From Macrostomum lignano (taxonomy: Eukaryota): DNA of 64,000 nucleotides. The notes beneath the pieces were generated by a model. It made no database searches and had not been told where the DNA came from. It saw nothing but the letters and a program-made list of their open reading frames with translations. Positions 22,870 to 40,300 of the stretch are shown one piece after another (position 1 is the first letter of the stretch; each line of letters opens with the position of its first letter). Position numbers and translations under genes: made by a program. The stretch is from NCBI GenBank assembly GCA_002269645.1, contig NIVC01002724.1:1-64000 (forward strand), read 5' to 3'.

Positions 22870-24914
22870 ATGATAGACACAAAAATTGATTGAAATTAAA
22901 AAAGCAAAAAAAACAAAATTTTCATGTTTGATATACATTAGTACTCTTAAATACTAAATTGTTTTGGTTTTTTTATAATTTAAAAATAATTTCCCAAGTT
23001 TTTGTAAAAACCCAAGATTATTCAAGACAAGAAAAAAAGATGTTATAGATGTTAATGTGTTATGGTTCTATCCTATAAAATGATCTCATTGCTATCACTA
23101 GGCCCTAAGTTGATATAGAGGACAGGGGTTACTTCTGCCTTCTAGAGTAATCCTATTGTTATTAATGCTAAAGTTGTTATTTATCTTATTATTTATGTAC
23201 TTCTTTCATGTATTTATCCTTTGGTAGCATATATATTTATCTATTGGTAGCATGTGTTTATCTACTAGTAGCATATATAATTATTTATTGGCCTGAATAA
23301 TCCTATGGTACTGTCTACTCTATTCTTATATATATCCCCTTATTCTATTCCTCTAAAGGGTTTTCTTTCAGTCTTGGGCATTCCTGGGATTAGAGGATCA
23401 TGGCTTACACTTTGCTAAGTTTACTGCCCTAGGGCAAAGTTTTTAGACTATATATCTAGATTAGTCTACCCTTTTGGTAGATGTTCTGCCTTCTAAGGCA
23501 AGTTGCTAGATTCTAAAGAATGGATCAAATCCCTTTTTGGTGCTCATTTTAGGTTGCTATCTACTATTCAAAAGAAGTAACATAAGAGTGAATACTAGCC
23601 CTGAGGCTAATTGAATTTTGTCTCCAAAAAGAACAAACAACTGGAGAAATTATTAGCATGCTTGAAAGAACTGCAATTTACAAGAATAGTTATCATTTAA
23701 CAGTTTATTTGGTTAGGCTTTCAGTTGGCTTCTATTTTATAATAAACTTTTTGCTTACTTTTTTAATCATAACAACATATAAAATATACAAAATATATAA
23801 AATATTTCAAATATGTGTATGATATAACAAAATAATGCAATTTTGAAATTATTTTTGAAGAAATTGATCTACTAAAAGTGAAGCCTTTTACAGACATTAG
23901 AGTCTTAAAACACTTTTTACAAATCCCTAATGCATTTATTAGGGCCTAATAGTAGAATATAAGATATTCCAATACTAATTAATAGTACAGATACTTTTTG
24001 CTTTACAATTATTGACTATAACTGATAATTTAGCAATAAAGAATGACCTTAATATTAAATATATATTTTTTATACTTTAGTTTCTAAAGATCTAATATTA
24101 TTAGCTCATATGAATGTAACTATATAAAATGAAATTTTCAATGGTAAAATATTTTTTTTATAAATAATAAGATAGTTGATAAAAAATCAATATGCATTAT
24201 TTTTTAAATAGAAAAATTGTCTTTTTAATATAACTTGTATTTTCTTTGTCTTTTGTATAAATTTTACAATTAAAAAAAGCTAAGAGTGTGCTTGTAAATA
24301 TAAAAAGTTGTTTATAAATGATTATTTTTTTTTAATAAAAATAGCATTTATTTTACTAAAATAGTATAAATACCTATTTTTCTAAATTTTTTATAGGATT
24401 ATAAGAGCCATAGTGATAATTTACAATGAAACACTATTGGTATCTAGATATCATCAGCTGGTTGACATGCCAGCCAAGGCAAGTAGGTATAGAATTAAAC
24501 AATCAAGCACTAAACTTTTTTAAATGTTGTTCACAAGACAAGAGCTTGAATATTAAATCTATAAAACAAAGAAAAAATATAGGAAAGTTAAGGAAAAAAA
24601 CTTATGATCACAGAAACAAATAAATTAAAAAAAGGCATTAAATGGTTGAGGCAAGAAAGAGAAAAAACTTGAATTACAAGCAGAGAAAAGCAATATTGCA
24701 AAAAATCTCGACAGATGGATGTATATTGCAGTTTGATGAAGAACTATGTTGCACCAGCCAGGTAAAATTCAGAAAGTTGAACATGCATGACTACAATTCA
24801 AGCTGGTTAACTTGAAATTTAATTTTTCCTAAAACTGGAAATGATCAATTCTCTTTTGATGCAAGAATAAAACAACAATTTTTGCTACAATCATTAGTTT
24901 GAACAAGAAATACC

Positions 24915-25436
24915 ATGGCTGACAAAGAGAAAGCTGACAAAAAGAAGCAAAAGAAGGAGGCTGAAAAAGCAGCCAAATTGGCCAAGTTTCAAGCCAAGAA
25001 ACAGTTAGAGGAGCAGCAGAAAGCCGCTGCAGCAGCTGCTGATGGACAAAAGCAATCAAAAAAGAAGAAAGCTGGCAAGCCAGAGAAGCCAGCTGGTCCA
25101 GCTGAGTACAAGTGGGAGCACGAGCCCGGGCAGCGTAAGAACACAGCCTGTCCCCTACCAGAGGCCTATGAGCCTCGCTATGTTGAATCTGCCTGGTACG
25201 AATGGTGGGAATCTAAAGGCTTCTTCAAGCCCGAATATCAACAGCCAGATTTTACTAAACCAAATCCCAGAGGTATATTTATGATGGTGATTCCGCCGCC
25301 GAATGTCACAGCTGGCCTGCATATTGGCCACGCGTTGACTAGCGCTATTGAGGACACCCTAACTAGGTGGCACCGGATGCGGGGTGAGACCACCCTGTGG
25401 AATCCCGGATGCGATCACGCTGGCATTGCTACGCAG
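24915..25436 (+). CDS. VARS1: ValRS exon 1 (K/E-rich N-terminus, HIGH motif)
   Basis: In-frame TGA at 24900 just upstream of the ATG; donor CAG|gtttgt. Confidence 0.93.
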
Positions 25437-28400
25437 GTTTGTGTTGGCTGGTGCCATTTCAGATCCCACAGTTTCATCAACTCTTAAAATCTCATCAATC
25501 CCACAATCTCGGCACTCCCACAATCTGAGCACTCATTAGCTTGACACTCCCACAACCTGAGCACTCTCACAATCTCGGCACTCCCACAATAGTCGAACTC
25601 TAAAAATCTACACATCCTCAATCTCGGCCCTACCATAATCTCAGCACTCCCGCGATCTCTTAGAACTCTCACAATCTTAGAACTCTCACAATCTGAGCAT
25701 TCCACAATCTTAAAACTCTCACAATCTGAGCACTCCCACAATCTTAGAACTCTCACAATCTGAGCACTCCCACAATCTTAGAACTCTCACAATCTGAGCA
25801 CTCCCACAATCTTAGAACTCTCACAATCTGAGCACTCCCATAATCTTAGAACTCTCACTATCTGAGCACTCCCACCATCTTTGAACTTTCACAATCTGAG
25901 CACTCCACAATCTCGGCCCTCCCATTATCTTAGAACTTCCATAATCTCAGCCCTCCCACAATCTGAGCACTCTCACAATCTGAGCGTTCCCACAATCTTA
26001 GAACTCTCAAAATCCGAGCACTGCCACAATATCGGCAAGTCAATAATCTAAGTAGTCTCAAAGTCTGAGCACTCTCACAATATCCAACTGCCGCAGGTTG
26101 TAGTGGAAAAGAAGCTGATGCGAGAGCGCGGCCTGACCCGACACGACCTCGGCCGGGAAGCATTCGAACAAGAAATCTGGCGCTATCGCAACGAGAAAGG
26201 CGATCGAATCTATTATCAATTGCGTCATCTCGGCTGCTCATGCGATTGGTCACGGGCTCGATTCACAATGGAACCAAAAATGAGTCGGGCCGTTATTGAA
26301 GCCTTCGTTCGCATGCACGGCATGGGCCTGATGTACCGGGCCAACCGGCTGGTTAACTGGTCCTGCACCCTGCGCAGCGCCATCTCCGATATCGAAGTGG
26401 AAAAGAAGGAACTGACTGGCAGGAAAGCGCTTCACGTGCCCGGCTACGAGCAGCCCATTGAGTTCGGCGTGCTCACCCATTTTGCCTATCCGTTAGCAGA
26501 TTCGGATGAGAAGATTGTCGTGGCTACTACTCGGCCGGAAACTATGCTGGGCGACACTGCTGTGGCTGTGCACCCGGAAGATCCTAGGTAGGTTGCGGTT
26601 ATTAATTACTTGTAGAATTGTGTTGATTGTGTTTGAAATTTTGCCGTATCGAATGTATCGAAAATAGAGTTTGCACAGGTTATGATGTACTAGAAAGCGT
26701 CATTTTAAATTAGCTTGCCGTTATGTATCAAAAAATCATTATCAGAGTAGATCATTGGTAAAATTGCCCGATATGTATCGAAAATCACATATCTAGATCG
26801 ATTGTCGATTGGCCGATATGAATAGAAAATCACTTTATCAGCGTGTTACATTATATAGTACAGTTAGCCGATATGTATCGAAAATTAATTTATAGGCGTA
26901 TTGGATTACATCGTAAAATCGGCCGATATGTATCGAAAATCACTTTATCAATGTTTTATATTAGATTGTAAAATCGGCCGATATGTATCAAAAATCACTT
27001 TATCAGCGTTTTATGTTAGATTATAAAATCGGCCGATATGTATCGAAAATCACTTTATCAGCGTATTGGATTACAGTAAAATCGGCCGATATGTATCGAA
27101 AATCACTTTATCAGCGTATTGGATTACATTATGTAATGTATTCGGCCGATATGTATCGATAATAGCAATTAAATTATTCGAAACCAACTCTCCGCTCCCC
27201 CTAGATACAAGCACATGCACGACCGTCGTATCGTTCATCCGTTCTTCCCCGACCGGGAGATGCGCGTCGTTGCTGACAGCTTTGTCGAGCGCGAGTTCGG
27301 CACAGGCGCGGTGAAAATCACCCCGGCTCACGACGCCAACGATTTTGAATGCGGCATTCGTAACAATCTCGCCTTTATCACAGTCATCGGCGAGGACGGT
27401 CGCATCGCCGACAATTGCGGCGAGTTCTCCGGTTTGCCCCGGTTCGATGCTCGCCAACGCGTTGTGGACGCTTTGAAAGCCAAGGGTCTCTGGATTGGAG
27501 AGCAGGACAATCCTATGGTTGTGCCAATTTGTAGTCGCAGCAAAGACGTTATTGAACCGCTAATTAAGCCGCAATGGTTTGTTCTTTTATCATGCTTGTT
27601 TTACACTATAAAAGTTGTGCAGTGATAACTTGACTTTAATATTTAACAATCGTAGGGTTTCAGAATTAAAAAGTTCGCCCCAAAGTTCTATTTCTATTTT
27701 AAAAATCCTGAATTCGATGAAAAATTGCCCAGATTTCTGTAATAATCGCCCCAGATTTACATAAAAATCGCCTTAGATTTCTAATCACCTTAGATTTCTA
27801 TGAAAAATCGCCCCTGTTTCTATGTAAAATAGCCCCAGATTTCTATGAAGAATCGCTCCAGATTTCTATGAAGAATCACCCCAGATTTCTATGAAGAATC
27901 ACCCCAGATTTCTATAAATAATCGCCCCAGATTTTTATGAAGAATCGCCCCAGATTTCTATGAAAAATCGCCCCAGATTTCTATGAAGAATCGCCCCTAA
28001 ATTTCTATGAAAAATCACCTCAGATTTCTATGAAGAATCACCCCAGATTTCTATAAATAATCGCCCCAGATTTTTATGAAGAATCGCCCCAGATTTCTAT
28101 GAAGAATCACCCCAGATTTCTATGAAGAATCACCCCCGATTTCTATGAAGAATCGCCCCTAAATTTCTATGAAGAATCGCCCCAGATTTCTATAAAGAAT
28201 CACCCCAGATTTCTATAAAGAATCACCCCAGATTTCTATGAAGAATCACCCCAGATTTCTATGAAGAATCACCCCAGATTTCTATGAAGAATCGCCCCAG
28301 ATTTCTATGAAAAATCGCCCCAGATTTCTATGAAGAATCGCCCCTAAATTTCTATGAAAAATCACCTCAGATTTCTATGAAGAATCGCCCCTAGATTTCC

Positions 28401-31400
28401 ATGAAAAATCGCCCCAGATTTCTATGAAGAATCGCTCCAGATTTCTATGAAGAATCACCCCAGATTTCTATGAAGAATCACCCCAGATTTCTATGAAAAA
28501 TCGCCCCAGATTTCTATGAAGAATCGCCCCTAGATTTCCATGAAAAATCGCCCCAGATTTCTATGAAGAATCGCCCCAGATTTCTATAAAGAATCACCCC
28601 AGATTTCTATGAAAAATCGCCCCAGATTTCTATGAAGAATCGCCCCTAAATTTCTATAAAGAATCGCCCCAGATTTCTATAAAGAATCGTCCCAGATTTC
28701 TATGAAGAATCGCCCCAGATTTCTATGAAAAATCGCTCCAGATTTCTATGAAGAATCGCCCCAGATTTCTATAAAAAATCGCTCCAGATTTCTATGAAGA
28801 ATCGCCTTCAATCTTGCACTCCAGGTACGTCCGCTGCGAAGGCATGGCCAAGCGCGCCTTAGACGCGGTGGAATCTGGCGAACTGCAGCTCATACCCGAA
28901 TATCACAATCGAGTTTGGCGCGAATGGCTCAGCAACTGTCGCGATTGGTGCATCAGCCGCCAGCTCTGGTGGGGCCATCAGGTGCCGGCTTGGCTGCCGC
29001 TGATCGACGGTAAACCGGCAGGCGGATGCGACCCCAATAGCGGCGACTCCTGGCTGATTGGGCGCAACCATGACGAGGCGATGGCTCAGGCCAGGGCCAA
29101 GTGGCCTAAAGAGGCCGCTGAAGGCCGGCTGACTTTAAAGCAGGTAAATAAAAAGGTGTTGGCAGCCAGCCACCCATCCCGTGATTCAATAAGGAATCTC
29201 ATGACCCCCTTCTGCGAGATTCATATGACCCCTCACTTAAGAAATCATTGGGGAGTCATATGACCCCCTCATCCAAGAGAAATCATCAGGGAGTCATACG
29301 ACCCCCTCACCCAAGAGAAATCATTGGGGAGTCATACGACCCCCTCATCCAAGAGAAATCATCAGGGAGTCATACGACCCCCTCACCCAAGAGAAATCAT
29401 TGGGGAGTCATACGACCCCCTCACCCAAGAGAAATCATGAGGGAGTCATACGACCCCCTCACCCAAGAGAAATCATCAGGGAGTCATACGACCCCCTCAC
29501 CCAAGAGAAATCATCAGGGAGTCATACGACCCCCTCACCCAAGAGAAATCATCAGGGAGTCATACGACCCCCTCACCCAAGAGAAATCATGAGGGAGTCA
29601 TACGACCCCCTCACCCAAGAGAAATCATGAGGGAGTCATACGACCCCCTCATCCAAGAGAAATCATTGGGGAGTCATACGACCGCCTCACCCAAGAGAAA
29701 TCATCAGGGTGTCATATGACCCCCTCACCCAAGAGAAATCATCAGAGTGTCATATGACCCCCTCACCAAAGAGAAATCATCAGAGTGTCATATGACCCCA
29801 CCAGAGAATCTCAGGATGTCACTCACAGGACTCTTTTTTACCTACCGATTTCTTTTCATTAATGAAGTATTTCAAGATAAGCTCTAAAGTAACTTCACAA
29901 TTTCACTCGCAGGACCCGGACGTCTTGGACACCTGGTTCAGCTCTCAACTATTTCCATTTAGCGTATTCGATTGGCCAGATCAAACTCTAGAATTGAGCA
30001 CATTCTATCCTGGCACTCTTTTGGAGACTGGACACGACATCCTGTTTTTCTGGGTGGCCCGAATGGTTATGGCCGGATTAACATTGATGGACAAGCTGCC
30101 CTTTCGCTACGTGTATCTTCACGCTATTGTTCGCGACTCTCATGGACAGAAAATGTCCAAATCTAAGGGCAACGTCATCGATCCAATGGACGTCATTAAT
30201 GGCATCACGCTTGAGGTTCGCGTCATTTTTGGATTTTGGGATTATACTGCATAATATTGTTTGCAATATGCTCACATAAGCTACTCAACAACTACTCAGA
30301 TAAGCTACTCAGAAACTACTCAGATAAGCTACTCAGAAACTACTTAGATAAGCTACTCAGAAACTACTCAGATAAGCTACTCAGAAACTACTTAGATAAG
30401 CTACTCAACAAATACTCAGATAAGCTACTCAGAAACTACTCAGATAAGCTACTCAGAAACTACTTAGATAAGCTACTTAACAACTACTCAGATAAGCTAC
30501 TCAGAAACTACTCAGATAAGCTACTCAGAAACTACTTAGATAAGCTACTCAGAAACTACTCAGATAAGCTACTCAGAAACTACTTAGATAAGCTACTCAA
30601 CAAATACTCAGATAAGCTACTCAGAAACTACTCAGATAAGCTACTCAGAAACTACTTAGATAAGCTACTTAACAACTACTCAGATAAGCTACTCAGAAAC
30701 TACTCAGATAAGCTACTCAGAAACTACTTAGATAAGCTACTCAGAAACTACTCAGATAAGCTACTCAGAAACTACTTAGATAAGCTACTCAGAAACTACT
30801 CAGATAAGCTACTCAGAAACTACTCAGATAAGCTACTCAACAACTACTCAGATAAGCTACTCAGAAACTACTCAAATAAGCTACTTAATAACTCCTTAGA
30901 TAAGCTACTCAACAACTACTCAGATAAGCTACTCAGATAAGCTACTCAGAAACTACTTAGATAAGCTACTCAACAACTACTCAGATAAGCTACTTAATAA
31001 CTCCTTAGATAAGCTACTCAGAAACTACTTAGATAAGCTACTCAACAAATACTCAGACAAGCTACTCAGAAACTACTCAGATAAGCTACTCAGAAACTAC
31101 TTAGATAAGCTACTCAACAACTACTCAGATAAGCTACTCAGAATCTACTCAGATAAGCTACTCAGAAACTACTCAGATAAGCTACTCAGAAACTACTCGG
31201 ATAAGCTACTCAACAACTACTCAGATAAGCTACTCAACAACTACTCAGATCAGCTACTCAGAAACTACTCGGATAAGCTACTCAACAACTACTCAGATAA
31301 GCTACTCAAAAACTACTCAGATAAGCTACTCAAAAACTGCTCAGATAAGCTACTCAAAAACTACTCAAATAAGCTACTTAATAACTCCTTAGATAAGCTA

Positions 31401-34400
31401 CTCAAAAACTGCTCAGATAAGCTACTCAAAAACTACTCAAATAAGCTACTTAATAACTCCTTAGATAAGCTACTCAAAAACTGCTCAGATAAGCTACTCA
31501 AAAACTGCTCAGATAAGCTACTCAAAAATTGCTCAGATAAGCTACTCAAAAACTACTCAAATAAGCTACTTAATAACTCCTTAGATAAGCTACTCAAAAA
31601 CTGCTCAGATAAGCTACTCAAAAACTACTCAAATAAGCTACTTAATAACTCCTTAGATAAGCTACTCAAAAACTGCTCAGATAAGCTACTCAAAAACTAC
31701 TCAAATAAGCTACTTAATAACTCCTTAGATAAGCTACTCAAAAACTGCTCAGATAAGCTACTCAAAAACTGCTCAGATAAGCTACTCAAAAATTGCTCAG
31801 ATAAGCTACTCAAAAACTACTCAAATAAGCTACTTAATAACTCCTTAGATAAGCTACTCAAAAACTGCTCAGATAAGCTACTCAAAAACTACTCAAATAA
31901 GCTACTTAATAACTCCTTAGATAAGCTACTCAAAAACTGCTTAGATAAGCTACTCAAAAACTGCTCAGATAAGCTACTCAAAAACTGCTCAGATAAGCTA
32001 CTCAAAAACTACTCAAATAAGCTACTTAATAACTCCTTAGATAAGCTACTCAAAAACTGCTCAGATAAGCTACTCAAAAACTGCTCAGATAAGCTACTCA
32101 AAAACTGCTCAGATAAGCTACTCAAAAACTACTCAAATAAGCTACTTAATAACTCCTTAGATAAGCTACTCAAAAACTGCTCAGATAAGCTACTCAAAGA
32201 TTCACCTTTAACATAGAAGTTTGTTATCCAAAAAATCCCACAGTCTCTTCACGCTCAACTCGAAGATTCGAACCTGGACCGTCGCGAGATTGATCGAGCT
32301 CGCCAGTGCCAGAAGGAAGATTATCCCAATGGCATTCCTGAGTGCGGCACCGACGCCCTGCGCTTCGCTCTCTGCGCCTACAGCGCTCAAGGACGCGATA
32401 TCAACTTGGACGTGCTACGAGTTCAAGGATATCGGTTCTTCTGCAACAAGATGTGGCAAGCTGTACGCTATGTGCTTATGTGTCTGGGCGATTCGTTTCA
32501 ACTGCCCGAGACTCGGCTGCCGCATCGAATTGGCAGCTCGTTGGATCAATGGATTCTGTCTAGGCTGACCTACACTGTGCGAGCTATTGACAAAGGATTG
32601 GAGGCCTACGACTTCCAGGTTTGTGTGGACCTTAGTTATAGCATGATAGTCCCTTTGCATCATTGGCGAGAATTCTCCTACCCTAATAGTAAGATTCCCC
32701 TACCCTAATGGTAAGATTTCCCGCTCTCTAATGGTGAGAATCCCCAATCCCTAATGGTGAGATTCCCCAATCCCTAATGGTGAGATTCCCCAATCCCTAA
32801 TGGTGAGATTCCCCAATCCCAAATAGTGAGATTCCCCAATCCCTAATGGTGAGAATCCCCAATCACTAATGGTGAGATTCCCCAATCCCCAATAGTGAGA
32901 TTCCCCAATCCCTAATGGTGAGAATCCCCAATCCCTAATAGTGAGATTCCCCTATCCCTAATGGTGAGATTCCCCAATCCCCAATAGTGAGATTCCCCAA
33001 TCCCTAATGGTGAGATTCCCCAATCCCTAATGGTGAGAATCCCCAATCCCTAATAGTGAGATTCCCCAATCCCTAATGGTGAGATTCCCCAATCCCTAAT
33101 AGTGAGATTCCCCAATCCCTAATGGTGAGAATCCCCAATCCCTAATGGTGAGATTCCCCAATCCCCAATAGTGAGATTCCCCAATCCCTAATGGTGGGAA
33201 TACCCAATCCCTAATGGTGACATTCCCCAATCCCCAATAGTGAGATTCCCCAATCCCTAATGGTGAGATTCCCCAATCCCTAATGGTGACATTCCCCAAT
33301 CCCCAAAAATGAGATTCCCCAATCCTTAATGGTGAGAATCCCCAATCCCCAATGGTGAGATTCCCCAATCCTTAATAATGAGAATCCCCAATCCCTAATG
33401 GTGAGATTCCCCAATCCCCAATAGTGAGATTCCCCAATCCTTAATAATGAGAATCCCCAATCCCTAATGGTGAGATTCCCCAATCCCCAATAGTGAGATT
33501 CCCCAATCACTAATGGAGAGAATCCCCAATCACCAATGGTGAGATTCCCCAATCCCCAATAGTGAGATTCCCCAATCACTAATGGTGAGATTCCCCAATC
33601 CCCAATAGTCAGATTCCCCAATCACTAATGGTGAGATTCCCCAATCCCCAATAGTGAGATTCCCCAATCCCTAATGGTGAGATTCCCCAATCCCCTGTCC
33701 ACTCCAGTCGGCCACCACCGCCTGCTACAATTTCTGGCTGTACGACTTCTGCGATGTGTACCTGGAGTACTCGAAGCTCGCCTTAAAGGACCCCGAATAC
33801 GACGCCGACTTGATCAGGCACACGCTGTACATCTGCTGCGACACGGGCCTGCGACTGGCTCATCCATTCATGCCCTTCATCACTGAGGAGCTCTGGCAGC
33901 GATTGCCTCGACATCCGCCGACGCCGCTGTTCTCCGAGCCCAGCCTGTGTGTTGCTGAGTTCCCTTCGATTGGCGAGTTTCACTGCTATCGTAAAGAGCA
34001 TTGCGAGACTGAGGTTGATCAGCTGATCAAAATTATTAAGGTGAGAATAAAGTGCATATTTCGACTTTTGTCCTAATAAGCACCATTGATACTTGACGTT
34101 TCTAACAAACAGTATTTCATGAACACAATTTCTAAGAATCTTGAATCTGTTCTAGTAATCAGTATCCATTTTCTAGTAATCAGTATTCCTTTTCTAGTAA
34201 TCAGTATCCCATTTCTAGTAATCAGTCTCCCATTTCTAGTAATCAGTCTCCCATTTCTAGTAATCAGTATCCCTTTCTAGTAATCAGTATCCCTTTCTAG
34301 TAATCAGTATCCCTTTTCTAGTAATCAGTATAAGATTCATTTTTGAAGCATTTCTAAGAAAGCCTGTAAGCTATTACTACTATATTATTATTACCATACC

Positions 34401-35417
34401 GCCCTGTAGGCAGTCCGCAGTCTCCGCGGTGAATACCAGCTGACTGGACGCCAGCGAACTCGCGCCATTCTGGTCACAGCAGATTCCGAACTCGCTGCTC
34501 TAGTACAACGAGAGCAGAAACCATTGTGCAGCCTCTCCAACTGCTCCATCATCGAGTGCAGCAGCAGTCGTCCAACCGAAGCCTGCGCTATGAACACCCT
34601 GAACGATCGGGTTGAACTGCACCTGGTCCTAGCTGGCATTGTTGACCTCGCCAAGGAGGCCGCCCGGCTGGCATCCCGGCTGGACACCCTCGACAAGCAG
34701 GTGGCGAAGCTTCGCGAACAGCTTGACGCGCCGGGCTCGGCGAGCATGCCGGAGGCTGTCCGTGCGGCCAACAGAGACAAGCTGGAGAAGCTGCTGACCG
34801 AACGGGCCAAGCTGGCCGAGTCAGCTGTTGTGTCTGGCGGCAGCGGCGGCATCAAGCAGCTGATTCGCCTGTCGAATAGCAAATCCGCTTATCTACTGAC
34901 TGAAGCGGCCAAGTGCATTGCTAATCTGCTTGGCAACGGGCAGAAGATCACTACTGTTCAAGTGGCCGACAAGCAGACTCGAGACCGGCTAATCAACTGT
35001 AACAATATGCCAAATGGAAATGCCGAATTCGTAGCGACATTCGATAGTTCCAACCCCAATGATGCAATCTTTGATTTGATTGGCCTGTGCCACCGACTGC
35101 AGCCGGGTGTGCATTGCGCCAGAGACCAATGGATTAGCCTGGCTATTAGCCGCCTATTGCCAGCCGTGGTTGCCATGGCAACTAACAGCCGGCATTCTTC
35201 TATTGGCCGCTGTCAATTTGTAGACTTTGCCCGAATGCTGAATGGCTACTTGGCTACCAGGACTTTTCTGGTCGGCGAGTCGCTCAGTGCTGCCGATGCG
35301 GCTGTTGCAAGTCTTCTTCAACAGGTTTCTAGCGATGTTGCCGTGACAACATTGACCGAGTTTGGCAATGTTAGACGGTATTTGGATCTGATGAAGCACC
35401 GGGAGCCGCTTGCCTGA
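24915..35417 (+). CDS. VARS1: Valyl-tRNA synthetase, cytosolic type, with a C-terminal GST-like extension; join(24915..25436,26097..26587,27205..27576,28825..29143,29913..30215,32244..32618,33708..34040,34410..35417), ~1240 aa
   Basis: All introns are GT-AG and the phases close (3723 nt). Motifs: [19 protein letters not shown], editing domain [85 protein letters not shown]. Confidence 0.97.
25495..26080. repeat. ValRS intron 1 minisatellite, alternating CACAATCTGAGCACTC / CACAATCTTAGAACTC
   Basis: Direct inspection. Confidence 0.9.
26097..26587 (+). CDS. VARS1: ValRS exon 2
   Basis: VVEKKL...HPEDPR; splice sites in phase. Confidence 0.95.
26770..27160. repeat. ValRS intron 2 ~55-bp repeat, core GGCCGATATGTATCGAAAATCACTTTATCA
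   Basis: Direct inspection. Confidence 0.85.
27205..27576 (+). CDS. VARS1: ValRS exon 3 (editing domain)
   Basis: [12 protein letters not shown]; [16 protein letters not shown]. Confidence 0.95.
27730..28810. repeat. ValRS intron 3 23-bp minisatellite GCCCCAGATTTCTATGAAGAATC
   Basis: Direct inspection. Confidence 0.95.
28825..29143 (+). CDS. VARS1: ValRS exon 4
   Basis: [12 protein letters not shown]. Confidence 0.95.
29200..29800. repeat. ValRS intron 4 38-bp minisatellite GACCCCCTCACCCAAGAGAAATCATCAGGGAGTCATAC
   Basis: Direct inspection. Confidence 0.95.
29913..30215 (+). CDS. VARS1: ValRS exon 5 (KMSKS)
   Basis: [11 protein letters not shown]; [12 protein letters not shown]; [12 protein letters not shown]. 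Confidence 0.96.
30275..32200. repeat. ValRS intron 5 24-bp minisatellite GATAAGCTACTCAGAAACTACTCA
   Basis: Variant composition shifts along the array. Confidence 0.95.
32244..32618 (+). CDS. VARS1: ValRS exon 6; not captured as one ORF in the track
   Basis: [12 protein letters not shown]...[12 protein letters not shown]...[10 protein letters not shown]...DQWILSRL. Confidence 0.95.
32690..33695. repeat. ValRS intron 6 23-bp minisatellite TGGTGAGATTCCCCAATCCCTAA
   Basis: Direct inspection. Confidence 0.95.
33708..34040 (+). CDS. VARS1: ValRS exon 7 (anticodon-binding domain)
   Basis: [14 protein letters not shown]; [14 protein letters not shown]. Confidence 0.95.
34150..34330. repeat. ValRS intron 7 ~21-bp repeat TTTCTAGTAATCAGTATCCC
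   Basis: Direct inspection. Confidence 0.9.
34410..35417 (+). CDS. VARS1: ValRS exon 8 (coiled-coil arm plus GST-like domain)
   Basis: Acceptor ctgtag; AVRSLR...DLAKEAARL coiled coil, a GGSGG linker, then ~188 aa to TGA. Confidence 0.92.
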   Translation, partial: AVRSLRGEYQLTGRQRTRAILVTADSELAALVQREQKPLCSLSNCSIIECSSSRPTEACAMNTLNDRVELHLVLAGIVDLAKEAARLASRLDTLDKQVAKLREQLDAPGSASMPEAVRAANRDKLEKLLTERAKLAESAVVSGGSGGIKQLIRLSNSKSAYLLTEAAKCIANLLGNGQKITTVQVADKQTRDRLINCNNMPNGNAEFVATFDSSNPNDAIFDLIGLCHRLQPGVHCARDQWISLAISRLLPAVVAMATNSRHSSIGRCQFVDFARMLNGYLATRTFLVGESLSAADAAVASLLQQVSSDVAVTTLTEFGNVRRYLDLMKHREPLA

Positions 35418-35582: not shown

Positions 35583-35612
35583 AATAAACATTTTTGTTTA
35601 ATTAGTAATAAA
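35583..35612 (+). terminator. Candidate ValRS polyadenylation signals (two AATAAA)
   Basis: AATAAA at 35583 and 35607, ~170-190 nt past the stop codon. Confidence 0.6.
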
Positions 35613-35939: not shown

Positions 35940-36520
35940 ACCTTCCAGATCCTCAGTTGCTGGGCCAGCCTCCCAGATCCTCAGTTGCTGGGCCACCAGC
36001 CTCCCAGATCTTCAGTTGCTGGGCCAGACTCCCAGATCCTCAGTTGCTGGGCCAGCCTCCCAGATCCTCAGTTGCTGGGCCAGCCTCTCAGATCCTCAGT
36101 TGCTGGGCCAGTCTCTCAGATTCTCAGTTGCTGGGCCAGCCTCCCAGATTCTCAATTGCTGGGCCAGCCTCCCAGATCCTCAGTTACTGGGCCAGCCTCC
36201 CAGATTCTCAGTTGCTGGGCCAGTCTCCCAGATTCTCAGTTGCTGGGCCAGCCTACCAGATCCTCAGTTGCTGGGCCAGTCTCCCAGATTCTCAGTTGCT
36301 GGGCCAGCCTCCCAGATCCTCAGTTGCTGGACCAGCCTCCCAGATCCTCAGTTACTGGGCCACCAACTTCCCAGATCCTCAGTTGCTGGGCCAGTCTCCC
36401 AGATTCTCAGTTGCTGGGCCAGCCTCCCAGATCCCCAGTTGCTGGACCAGCCTCCCAGATCCTCAGTTGCTGGGCCACCAGCCTCCCAGATCCCCAGTTG
36501 CTGGGCCAGTCTCTCAGATC
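35940..36520. repeat. 28-bp minisatellite CCCAGATCCTCAGTTGCTGGGCCAGCCT (diverged copy)
   Basis: Same unit as 38497-38915. Confidence 0.95.
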
Positions 36521-37307: not shown

Positions 37308-40300
37308 CTGAAATTAAAAGTCGAATAACTGCCTCACACTCTCAATCAGCACCACCACTCCACTGCCTCACACTTAATCAGCACCCACCACTCCACTGCC
37401 TCACACTTAATCAGCACCCACCACTCCACTGCCTCACACTTAATCAGCACCCACCACTCCACTGCCTCACTCTCGATCAGCACCAACCACCCCACTGCCT
37501 CACTCTCAATCAGCACCCACCACCCCACTGCCTCACACTTAATCAGCACCCACCACCCCACTGCCTCACACTTAATCAGCACCCACCACCCCACTGCCCC
37601 ATCACTTAATCAGCACCCACAATCCCATTGCCTCGCTCTCGATCAGCACCCACCACCCCACTGCCTCACACTTAATCAGCACCCACAATCCCATTGCCTC
37701 ATTCTCAATCAGCAACCACCACCCCACTGCCTCACTCTCAATCAGCACCCACCACCCCACTGCCTCACACTTAATAAGCACCCACCACCCCACTGCCTCA
37801 CACTTAATCAGCACCCACCACCCCACTGCCTCACTCTCAATCAGCACCCACAATCCCATTGCCTCGCTCTCGATCAGCACCCACCACCCCACTGCCTCAC
37901 ACTTAATCAGCAACCACCACCCCACTGCCTCACTCTCAATCAGCACCCACAATCCCATTGCCTCGCTCTCGATCAGCACCCACCACCCCATTGCACTGCC
38001 TCGCTCTCGATTTAGCCACTCACCTGAACTTTCCAGTCCGCACCTGCACGCCCAGCAGTCCAGCAGCCATCGCTCCGCCCACGTCGCTGACAATGTCGTC
38101 CCCAACCATGACCACAGCAGCGGCGCCGTCCAATCCGAGCGTTTTGACTCCGGCACCGAAGAAAGCCGCCGACGGCTTGCCGACAACCTCGGCCGTCGAA
38201 CCGGATGCGAACTCCAGCGCTCTGGCGAAGGCGCCGACATCCAGATGCAGCTGCTCCGCCTGCCTGTAGTAGCGGCCCATGCCGAGGCTGAGCAGCCCCA
38301 CTGGCTGCCCGCCGCCGCGCGCTGCCGGCGTCATCAACCGCTGGAAGGCGGCGTTCAACGCCGCGTAGCTGAACCCGTCGCTGGCGTCTCCGAGCACGAC
38401 GCAGTCGACAGGGTCGGCGGCGGTCGCTGCCACGTCTTGAAGCTCGGGAAGACAGTCTGGAGGATCGGTTTGAGGGGGGTTTTATCAATGCTGCGCATCC
38501 CAGATCCTCAGTTGCTGGGCCAGCCTCCCAGATCCTCAGTTGCTGGGCCAGCCTCCCAGATCCTCAGTTGCTGGGCCAGCCTCCCAGATCCTCAGTTGCT
38601 GGGCCAGCCTCCCAGATCCTCAGTTGCTGGGCCAGCCTCCCAGATCCTCAGTTGCTGGGCCAGCCTCCCAGATCCTCAGTTGCTGGGCCAGCCTCCCAGA
38701 TCCTCAGTTGCTGGGCCAGCCTCCCAGATCCTCAGTTGCTGGGCCAGCCTCCCAGATCCTCAGTTGCTGGGCCAGCCTCCCAGATCCTCAGTTGCTGGGC
38801 CAGCCTCCCAGATCCTCAGTTGCTGGGCCAGCCTCCCAGATCCTCAGTTGCTGGGCCAGCCTCCCAGATCCTCAGTTGCTGGGCCAGCCTCCCAGGTTAT
38901 TAGTTGCTGGGCCAGGCCCTGTGCTGTAGTTAGTTAACTGAAGAAATTCATGATACTACTACACTAGCTTTGGTTCTACCAGTAGTAATAAAAAAGGCTT
39001 TTTAAATCAAAATTTTGACTTGCTTCTTAATTCCTTGCATTACGAAAAGCTCGGTGAAAAGAGAAAGTTTTTAAACGCCAAAAAGGCTCAGGTTTCAATG
39101 ACAGATTTTCCTCCTTTCCTCCCTTTAAAAGGATCTATCCAGCTTATCCACCAACAGTGCAAGCATTTTGCCTCATTTGAAATGTTTTCCAAATTTAAGA
39201 GAATATAACTATTAGTTGGGAAACCGGATGAACTTCCGCAGCTCCAGGGGCCTCCGCGGCGCTGCCAGGTGCTTTTCTGCTGATGATAAAAAACACAAAA
39301 TTCCCGACATAGCCACTTCCGCCTTCAGAAAAAAATTAGTAGTCACATCCGGTTTGCTTGAAAGGTGGTTTCCCACTGTAACAGTACTTCATCTGCTATA
39401 TGCATATGAAAGCGGGAGTATGGGATTTCCAAGAAATTGCTGTAATAGCTATAAAATACAGCATTGGGCATGCGCGGGGCGGACAGCTGCATTAAGAGAT
39501 TTTCCTTCCCGATTTTCTCCAGGCAAGTGACGCAGCTCAGTAGCCAATAAAATCCGTCTGTGCCCTTGACAGGGACAATCATTGTGGCTTAGTGTGAGAC
39601 CGGATGTTAACAAGAAAAAGTTGTTATCTGATGTGGCTTAAAAGTCTTATTTTATTATTGTTAAATTATAGTTTCTGAAAATCGTAGATCCCAGATCCTA
39701 AGTCCCAGATCCTAGATTCCAGATCCTAGATCCCAGATCTTAGATCCCAGATCCTAAATCCCAGATCCTAGATCCCAGATCCCAGATCCCAGATCCCAGA
39801 TCCCAGATCCTAGATCCCAGATCCTAGATCCCAGATCCTAGATCCCAGATCCTAGATCCCAGATCCTAGATCCCAGATCCTAGATCCCAGATCCTAGATC
39901 CCAGATCCTAGATCCCAGATCCTAGATCCCAGATCCTAGATCCCAGATCCTAGATCCCAGATCCTAGATCCCAGATCCTAGATCCCAGATCCTAGATCCC
40001 AGATCCTAGATCCCAGATCCTAGATCCCAGATCCTAGATCCCAGATCCTAGATCCCAGATCCTAGATCCCAGATCCTAGATCCCAGATCCTAGATCCCAG
40101 ATCCTAGATCCCAGATCCTAGATCCCAGATCCTAGATCCCAGATCCTAGATCCCAGATCCTAGATCCCAGATCCTAGATCCCAGATCCTAGATCCCAGAT
40201 CCTAGATCCCAGATCCTAGATCCCAGATCCTAGATCCCAGATCCTAGATCCCAGATCCTAGATCCCAGATCCTAGATCCCAGATCCTAGATCCCAGATCC

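Follow-up and report, generated by a model that had tools for sequence, protein, structure and literature searches.

A C-terminal GST_C-type extension predicted in a valyl-tRNA synthetase of the flatworm Macrostomum lignano

A valyl-tRNA synthetase gene that reads on past its coiled coil

We analysed a stretch of 64 000 nt (positions 1 to 64 000 of contig NIVC01002724.1, assembly GCA_002269645.1; hereafter the window) from the genome of the free-living flatworm Macrostomum lignano, in which a gene for valyl-tRNA synthetase (ValRS) occupies positions 24915–35417 of the plus strand. Joining its stop-free segments at GT-AG junctions gave a model of eight exons, with a coding sequence (CDS) of 3723 nt and a product of 1240 aa (coordinates are collected in Table 1). 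This product is identical (100 % identity over 100 % of the length) to GenBank entry PAA55654.1 and UniProt entry A0A267E400, which is recorded as 'hypothetical protein BOX15_Mlig030791g2' and auto-named valine--tRNA ligase. What distinguishes the protein is its C terminus, where the exon that encodes the coiled-coil arm continues through the segment SGGSGG into a further 188 residues (hereafter the tail), the last ~95 of which are predicted to be of glutathione S-transferase (GST) type. The frame is open from 34410 up to the TGA at 35415–35417, exactly as the first-pass annotation of this DNA had read it, and every peptide string that it had quoted is present in the 1240-aa translation. As the chance of 188 stop-free codons in random sequence is about (61/64)^188 = 1e-4, the extension exceeds what chance would give.

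The remainder of the protein is that of a eukaryotic cytosolic class I ValRS. Pfam models of the catalytic and anticodon-binding regions matched the full-length sequence strongly (tRNA-synt_1, aa 94–725, 451 bits; Anticodon_1, aa 770–924, 120 bits), the class I signature motifs LHIGHA (HIGH-type) and KMSKS are both present, and identity to other animal ValRS proteins is 54–58 %. At the N terminus the protein begins directly with the Lys/Glu-rich segment, preceded by an in-frame TGA 15 nt before the ATG, both of which had been pointed out previously. Extensions of this kind have been termed the tRNA-binding domain of ValRS (PMC4394549), and in BLASTP comparisons the other invertebrate enzymes align from inside it, with no additional N-terminal domain. 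Likewise, translating the 24.9 kb upstream in all six frames revealed no segment resembling eEF1B-gamma or the N-terminal GST domain of ValRS (ValRS-N), no GST-like coding segment was found elsewhere in the 64-kb window, and neither a free-standing paralogue of the tail nor an N-terminal GST exon was found in the window or at the two paralogous loci described below.

To place this C terminus among those of other animals, the M. lignano core (aa 1–1052) was aligned to 119 other ValRS proteins retrieved by homology search from vertebrates, amphioxus, echinoderms, molluscs, an annelid, nemerteans, a brachiopod, arthropods, a priapulid, a nematode and corals. About 110 of the 119 terminate between 2 residues before and 4 residues after the position of M. 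lignano residue 1052, which bears out the earlier statement that ValRS normally ends shortly after the coiled coil; the remaining, larger offsets come from broken alignments of a single high-scoring segment pair (insect isoforms with an internal insertion) or from partial models. Among the retrieved proteins, none of the ~110 that end at the coiled coil has a C-terminal GST domain. The invertebrate enzymes retrieved are ~1045–1090 aa long and are without GST. They share with M. lignano an orthologous core (54–58 % identity over aa ~10–1045), the same K-rich N-terminal extension and the same C-terminal coiled coil, but stop there, whereas the M. lignano enzyme adds its 188 residues. The vertebrate enzymes, at ~1230–1290 aa, have an N-terminal extension of ~200–235 aa that contains Pfam GST_C. 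Although the M. lignano sequence is already public, the architecture of its tail is undescribed as far as literature searches show, in agreement with the first-pass annotation: no description was found of a C-terminal GST domain in ValRS or of aminoacyl-tRNA synthetase architectures in flatworms, and the literature puts the GST-like domain of this enzyme at the N terminus (PMC4394549).

The two halves of the tail

The first-pass annotation had assigned the whole tail to an EF1Bgamma/GST-like domain and had proposed a profile search of it, an expectation that was borne out for the distal half. The Pfam GST_C model (PF00043) matched tail residues 129–184 above its gathering cut-off of 20.7 bits, both with the tail alone (26.8 bits) and with the full protein (22.3 bits). 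For the tail alone GST_C_3 was also above its cut-off (23.4 vs 21.6 bits), whilst GST_C_2 (23.4 vs 24.9 bits) and Arc1p_N_like (23.4 vs 27 bits) fell below theirs. A profile built from 24 N-terminal ValRS GST domains (23 from vertebrates and one from P0048, a protein considered below) scored 31.0 bits on tail residues 93–157, compared with 8.6 bits for the best of 2000 shuffled tails, and hhalign gave a probability of 96.4 % over tail residues 90–155. On these scores, the GST signal in the distal half is real.

Comparison with solved structures and with individual residues pointed the same way. In a sequence search of the PDB, the top match of the tail was the GST-like domain of human eEF1B-gamma (5dqs, E=0.008), followed by GST-like domains of EPRS at non-significant values (E 0.6–0.8); no AIMP2, AIMP3 or MetRS/MARS chain was matched at E≤10. 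When the tail was aligned jointly with vertebrate ValRS-N, the invariant columns included Q93, W94, T138, L140, V141, A148 and D149 of the tail, and its motifs QW..la...lP and RTFLVGE..s.AD align with both vertebrate ValRS-N and human eEF1B-gamma. The tail thereby carries, across alpha4 to alpha6, the signature common to the two families, QW.s.a...l.P ... L..RT[FY]LVGE..[TS].AD. A PDB profile search placed ValRS-N itself close to eEF1B-gamma; vertebrate rows dominate that alignment, and the result has no bearing on the tail. When AlphaFold2 was supplied with the ValRS-N alignment, it predicted five helices at tail residues 85–183, with means of 67–91 for the predicted local distance difference test (pLDDT) over blocks of 10 residues. 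A Foldseek search of the PDB returned GST folds in all 50 of the matches listed, the first being eEF1B-gamma (5jpo; 24 % identity, query-normalised template modelling score 0.49). Taking profiles, motifs and model into account, we regard the distal ~95 residues as very probably a non-catalytic helical domain of GST_C type, related most closely to the GST-like domains that eEF1B-gamma and vertebrate ValRS carry.

The same cannot be said of the first ~90 residues, which scored no better than shuffled sequence; GST-like character is demonstrable for the last ~95 residues alone. Pfam GST_N gave no match in the tail at E≤10, and with the part of the ValRS-N profile that covers the N-subdomain the N-terminal half scored −1.0 bits, a value equalled or exceeded by 779 of 2000 shuffles. 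Even in the alignment-guided model, pLDDT was <50 for tail residues 1–13 and 28–67. The N-terminal thioredoxin-like subdomain of a canonical two-subdomain cytosolic GST fold is therefore not detectable in the tail, and the earlier assignment stands for its distal part only. Helices were predicted at tail residues 10–27, 41–50 and 69–83, and one Pro aligns with a conserved Pro of ValRS-N. Helix spacing and the aligned Pro together are compatible with a degenerate beta-alpha-beta-alpha-beta-beta-alpha subdomain; the predicted spacing alone would fit helical repeats too.

With respect to the latter, Pfam Arm (PF00514) gave a borderline match to a motif composed of SGGSGG and the first ~27 residues of the tail (~aa 1047–1079), scoring 16.4–22.4 bits depending on the fragment used (cut-off 20.6). 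In the PDB, too, the motif has matches, to consensus-designed armadillo proteins at just ~7–8 bits per repeat, and no Pfam Arm match was obtained in the 65 residues that follow it. The first-pass annotation had described the GGSGG element as a linker; the element is certainly present, within SGGSGG, but lies inside this Arm-like motif, and the segment may be structured rather than flexible. Judged by these scores, the proximal ~90 residues are best described as a putative divergent connector or subdomain. A precedent for a truncated N-subdomain exists among the GST-like domains of translation complexes, in EEF1E1/AIMP3 (PMC10452860).

Gene copies, relatives and origin of the tail

Three near-identical copies of the gene (g1, g2 and g3, the window containing g2) were found on separate contigs of assembly GCA_002269645.1, all of which encode the 1240-aa architecture with an intact tail. 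The copies are >99.6 % identical in CDS and have the same exon structure, their introns differing in length as minisatellite copy numbers vary. Models from an earlier M. lignano assembly are tail-bearing as well (P0131, P0002 and P0121). M. lignano has undergone a recent genome duplication, and the presence of three copies is consistent with it.

These data bear on whether the tail belongs to the main protein at all. It might be an artefact of annotation or assembly, or the mark of a minor isoform, with the main protein ending near residue 1052 via an unannotated splice or polyadenylation event. Transcripts of M. lignano are indeed often trans-spliced or polycistronic (PMC5730564), but the frame stays open from the coiled coil to 35415, and three contigs and two assemblies show one and the same structure. 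Moreover, the GenBank annotation of GCA_002269645.1, including this CDS, was built from genome-guided and de novo transcript assemblies of RNA-seq data and not ab initio (PMC5730564). Since the first Met within the tail is tail residue 53, the tail is also not a separate cistron with a full-length product of its own. We consider an artefact or minor isoform highly improbable, though a minor isoform that lacks the tail may occur beside the tailed protein.

A search for relatives of the tail yielded little outside M. lignano. Scanned exhaustively with phmmer, a library of 1.84 billion representative proteins gave, apart from M. lignano itself, only weak matches of EF1-gamma/GST_C type (≤38 % identity over ≤90 aa; a multi-copy EF1-gamma model was among them) and two proteins of repetitive, low-complexity sequence. 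As this library is clustered at 50 % identity and the cores of animal ValRS proteins are more than 50 % identical to one another, tailed orthologues possibly lie behind tail-less representatives, and the scan cannot exclude tails in other flatworms. A word-index search with the tail (188 residues) or the last exon (335 residues) found nothing and missed even the identical protein PAA55654.1, which the full-length query did recover, so this null carries no weight. A scan of metagenome contigs with the tail found no relatives.

A partial ValRS transcript was recovered from Logan contigs (L003, from SRR28338164, positions 1–1232). It is spliced, has 85 % nt identity to nt 445–1742 of the M. lignano CDS and ends short of the tail; it presumably derives from a different Macrostomum species, so that a congener at a useful distance is probably represented in public data. 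In place of 71 nt of the M. lignano sequence (CDS 1513–1583) it has 3 nt, which shifts the frame after ...REWLSNCRD; either an erroneous assembly or an alternative junction could account for this.

As regards origin, the first-pass annotation had left a choice between convergent and transposed acquisition. The GST-like domain found in ValRS is N-terminal and apparently restricted to Deuterostomia (Havrylenko & Mirande 2015, PMC4394549). Because the other protostome ValRS proteins retrieved here are without any GST domain, at the N terminus or elsewhere, the better reading is of an independent acquisition, presumably by fusion with an EF1B-gamma-type, GST_C-containing sequence. A transposed ValRS N-terminal domain was considered and is unlikely for the same reason. 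As no close paralogue of the tail was found anywhere (best match ≤38 % over ≤90 aa), the tail was not copied from another gene very recently. The base composition of the tail is unremarkable and gives no sign of foreign origin, with a GC content at third codon positions (GC3) of 0.54 compared with 0.54–0.68 in windows of the core.

A separate observation concerns P0048, a JGI-sourced ValRS of 1298 aa on a 4.1-kb contig, which has a complete N-terminal domain with both Pfam GST_N and GST_C. By eye this domain is nearer to eEF1B-gamma than to vertebrate ValRS-N, and it hints at ValRS having recruited EF1B-gamma-type GST domains more than once.

Several results weigh against a folded and functional tail. 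The structure prediction proposed by the first-pass annotation gave mixed results: the single-sequence AlphaFold2 model had a mean pLDDT of 45.6 and is unusable, and the better model was guided by the ValRS-N alignment and so leans to a GST fold. The Foldseek E-values were weak (0.02 or worse), the GST_C scores exceed their threshold only modestly and half of the tail is without a recognisable fold. Within the scope given above, neither the phmmer nor the metagenome scan turned up a tail homologue beyond M. lignano, so that conservation does not speak for a function. Between g1 and g2 there are 3 nonsynonymous and 3 synonymous differences in the 1052 codons of the core, compared with 4 nonsynonymous and 0 synonymous in the 188 codons of the tail, such that four of the seven amino-acid differences are located in the tail. 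The tail may thus be less tightly constrained than the core, which is under strong constraint; the copies, however, differ at only 6–10 of 1240 codons, too few for a ratio of nonsynonymous to synonymous rates, and are thus uninformative on selection.

Several of these points would be expected under the main null, namely that the tail is a functionless accident, in which ValRS became joined to part of a GST-like gene when its stop codon was lost or the locus was rearranged, and the fusion has since been tolerated, drifting and partly decayed. Partial decay would account for the unrecognisable first half, with its lack of a detectable family and its low model confidence, and the modest GST_C scores, the nonsynonymous excess among gene copies and the lack of homologues outside M. 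lignano all fit as well. Set against this, the 188 codons are open in three copies, each of which is transcribed into an annotated mRNA, and the key core motifs of GST_C are intact. Furthermore, the lack of a close donor paralogue speaks against a very recent fusion, and still the frame is open, and the GC3 of the tail falls inside the range of the core windows. On this evidence we judge a drifting fusion to be unlikely.

The surroundings of the coding exons are rich in tandem repeats. All seven introns of the gene are mostly occupied by a minisatellite array of their own (units of 17–55 bp, up to ~80 copies, 70–95 % matches), and these arrays produce long spurious open reading frames in several frames. 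Downstream of the gene, two further arrays at 35941–36520 and 38498–38915 have essentially the same 28-bp unit, CCTCCCAGATCCTCAGTTGCTGGGCCAG, and between them lies a third array, at 37328–37994, with a 33-bp unit.

Table 1. Features of the M. lignano ValRS gene in the window, and positions of its further copies
Feature	Position	Strand	Basis or remark
In-frame TGA	24900–24902	+	15 nt 5' of start ATG
ValRS CDS, exons 1–4	24915–25436, 26097–26587, 27205–27576, 28825–29143	+	GT-AG model
ValRS CDS, exons 5–8	29913–30215, 32244–32618, 33708–34040, 34410–35417 (including stop)	+	GT-AG model
Lys/Glu/Ala-rich N-terminal extension, ~aa 1–60	24915–25094	+	Translation; usual eukaryotic ValRS tRNA-binding appendix
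Coiled-coil tRNA-binding arm, Val_tRNA-synt_C (PF10458), aa 984–1042	34644–34820	+	30.9 bits exon fragment, 27.3 bits full protein; cut-off 25.9
SGGSGG segment	34833–34850	+	Same exon, after coiled coil
Arm-repeat-like motif, ~aa 1047–1079	34833–34931	+	Pfam Arm PF00514, borderline
Tail, I1053–A1240, 188 residues	34851–35414	+	Same exon, after SGGSGG
Proximal tail, tail residues 1–89 (aa 1053–1141)	34851–35117	+	Possible degenerate thioredoxin-like subdomain or helical Arm-like region
Putative GST C-terminal-type helical domain, tail residues 90–185 (aa 1142–1237), predicted helices alpha4 to alpha8	35118–35405	+	Profiles and model
Stop codon TGA	35415–35417	+	Read from sequence
AATAAA, probable polyadenylation signal	35583–35588	+	166 nt 3' of stop
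Intron minisatellite arrays, introns 1–7	25488–26030, 26811–27163, 27713–28806, 29240–29799, 30271–32198, 32681–33694, 34150–34331		
Further ValRS copies g1, g3	3001–12701 of L001 and 3001–12792 of L002		Contigs NIVC01001946.1 and NIVC01003356.1

A possible docking role for the tail

The closest known system is vertebrate VARS1, in which the same enzyme carries an appended domain of the same class. The ValRS-N match at tail residues 93–157 (31 bits) takes in both of its characteristic motifs, QW..a...l.P and RTyLVGE..tLAD, and the domain in M. lignano is likewise presumed to be a non-catalytic docking module. The differences are nevertheless considerable. The VARS1 domain is N-terminal, before the K-rich tRNA-binding segment, whereas that of M. 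lignano is C-terminal, after the coiled coil; in the latter only the helical GST_C half is recognisable and not the thioredoxin-like half, and ~8 residues are deleted between alpha4 and alpha5. M. lignano is in addition a protostome, whilst the N-terminal domain has been reported as restricted to deuterostomes (PMC4394549), and vertebrate VARS1 binds eEF1B, at its eEF1B-beta/delta subunit, whereas such binding is a proposal for the M. lignano tail. The GST-like domain at the N terminus of eEF1B-gamma (5dqs, 5jpo) was the best relative of solved structure in both the sequence and the fold search, at an identity of only ~24–38 % over 60–130 residues; unlike eEF1B-gamma, the tail has neither the EF1G C-terminal domain nor a detectable GST_N, and is fused to a synthetase.

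In vertebrates, the N-terminal GST domain of ValRS is required for binding to eEF1B, and the resulting complex is thought to pass Val-tRNA directly to eEF1A (PMC4394549; PMC9458455). More generally, the GST-like domains of eEF1B-gamma, EPRS, MetRS, AIMP2 and AIMP3 are dimerisation modules and not enzymes, and those of human VARS1 and of eEF1B-gamma type are regarded as non-catalytic (PMC10452860). By analogy with these appendices of the translation apparatus, the GST_C-type tail would act in protein–protein docking, and on balance we favour, if only by a little, the view that it is a real and functional docking appendix specific to this lineage. That the tail is folded, that selection has retained it, that it docks and what it docks to are all points that we infer. 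Given that eEF1B-gamma and ValRS-N are nearest to it, tethering of ValRS to eEF1B is the likeliest role; we name eEF1B as partner tentatively, at rather less than even confidence. The tail would then bind the exchange complex by way of a GST-type interface to one of the eEF1B subunits, and Val-tRNA would be handed to eEF1A as in the vertebrate ValRS–eEF1H complex, the tether having arisen independently and at the enzyme's other end.

The main functional rival is a partner of multisynthetase type, whereby the tail would dock into such an assembly by pairing with the GST-like domains of MetRS, GluRS/EPRS, AIMP2 or AIMP3. GST-like appendices of ~170–200 aa serve hetero-oligomerisation in EPRS, MARS1, AIMP2, AIMP3/EEF1E1 and yeast Arc1p; of these, AIMP3 shares a truncated N-subdomain with the tail and AIMP2 its C-terminal placement (PMC10452860, PMC4394549). 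Such domains are the assembly glue of the complex and tolerate degenerate N-subdomains (PMC10452860; PMC4394549), and ValRS of Caenorhabditis elegans is a member of a multisynthetase complex, albeit by other means (PMC4394549). The tail itself shows a weak similarity to Arc1p_N_like and, among PDB entries, to the GST-like domain of EPRS, but the former is under its cut-off (23.4 bits vs 27) and the latter not significant (E ~0.6 at best). With no AIMP3, AIMP2 or MetRS chain among the PDB matches at E≤10, and with eEF1B-gamma and ValRS-N consistently better matches than any multisynthetase domain, we hold a partner of this type to be decidedly unlikely, and docking onto eEF1B remains our preferred proposal.

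Taken to its furthest, a tether to eEF1B would mean that a protostome has re-invented the 'heavy' complex of ValRS and eEF1B, having placed an EF1B-gamma-type GST_C domain and a novel, possibly Arm-like connector at the C terminus of ValRS, beside the coiled coil, so that Val-tRNA is channelled with a different geometry. We offer this as a doubtful conjecture. A drifting fusion, on the other hand, would make the tail a minor curiosity in a genome that was duplicated recently.

GST-like appendices are the means by which eukaryotic synthetases and elongation factors assemble into complexes. To our knowledge, ValRS is the one synthetase that is tied to eEF1B, a link regarded as a deuterostome feature of its N-terminal domain, and we know of no synthetase-borne GST-like domain that is C-terminal. 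If the conjecture of a re-invented 'heavy' complex holds, the M. lignano enzyme would be the first of the synthetases to have a GST-like docking domain at the C terminus, and would constitute a natural experiment on why ValRS in particular becomes tethered to eEF1B. Gain of a domain of this class at the other end of the enzyme in a flatworm would represent convergent domain recruitment, and this would strengthen the case for recurrent selection for the channelling of Val-tRNA to eEF1A. As M. lignano is amenable to transgenesis, its ValRS would offer a second, geometrically different system in which such channelling could be tested.

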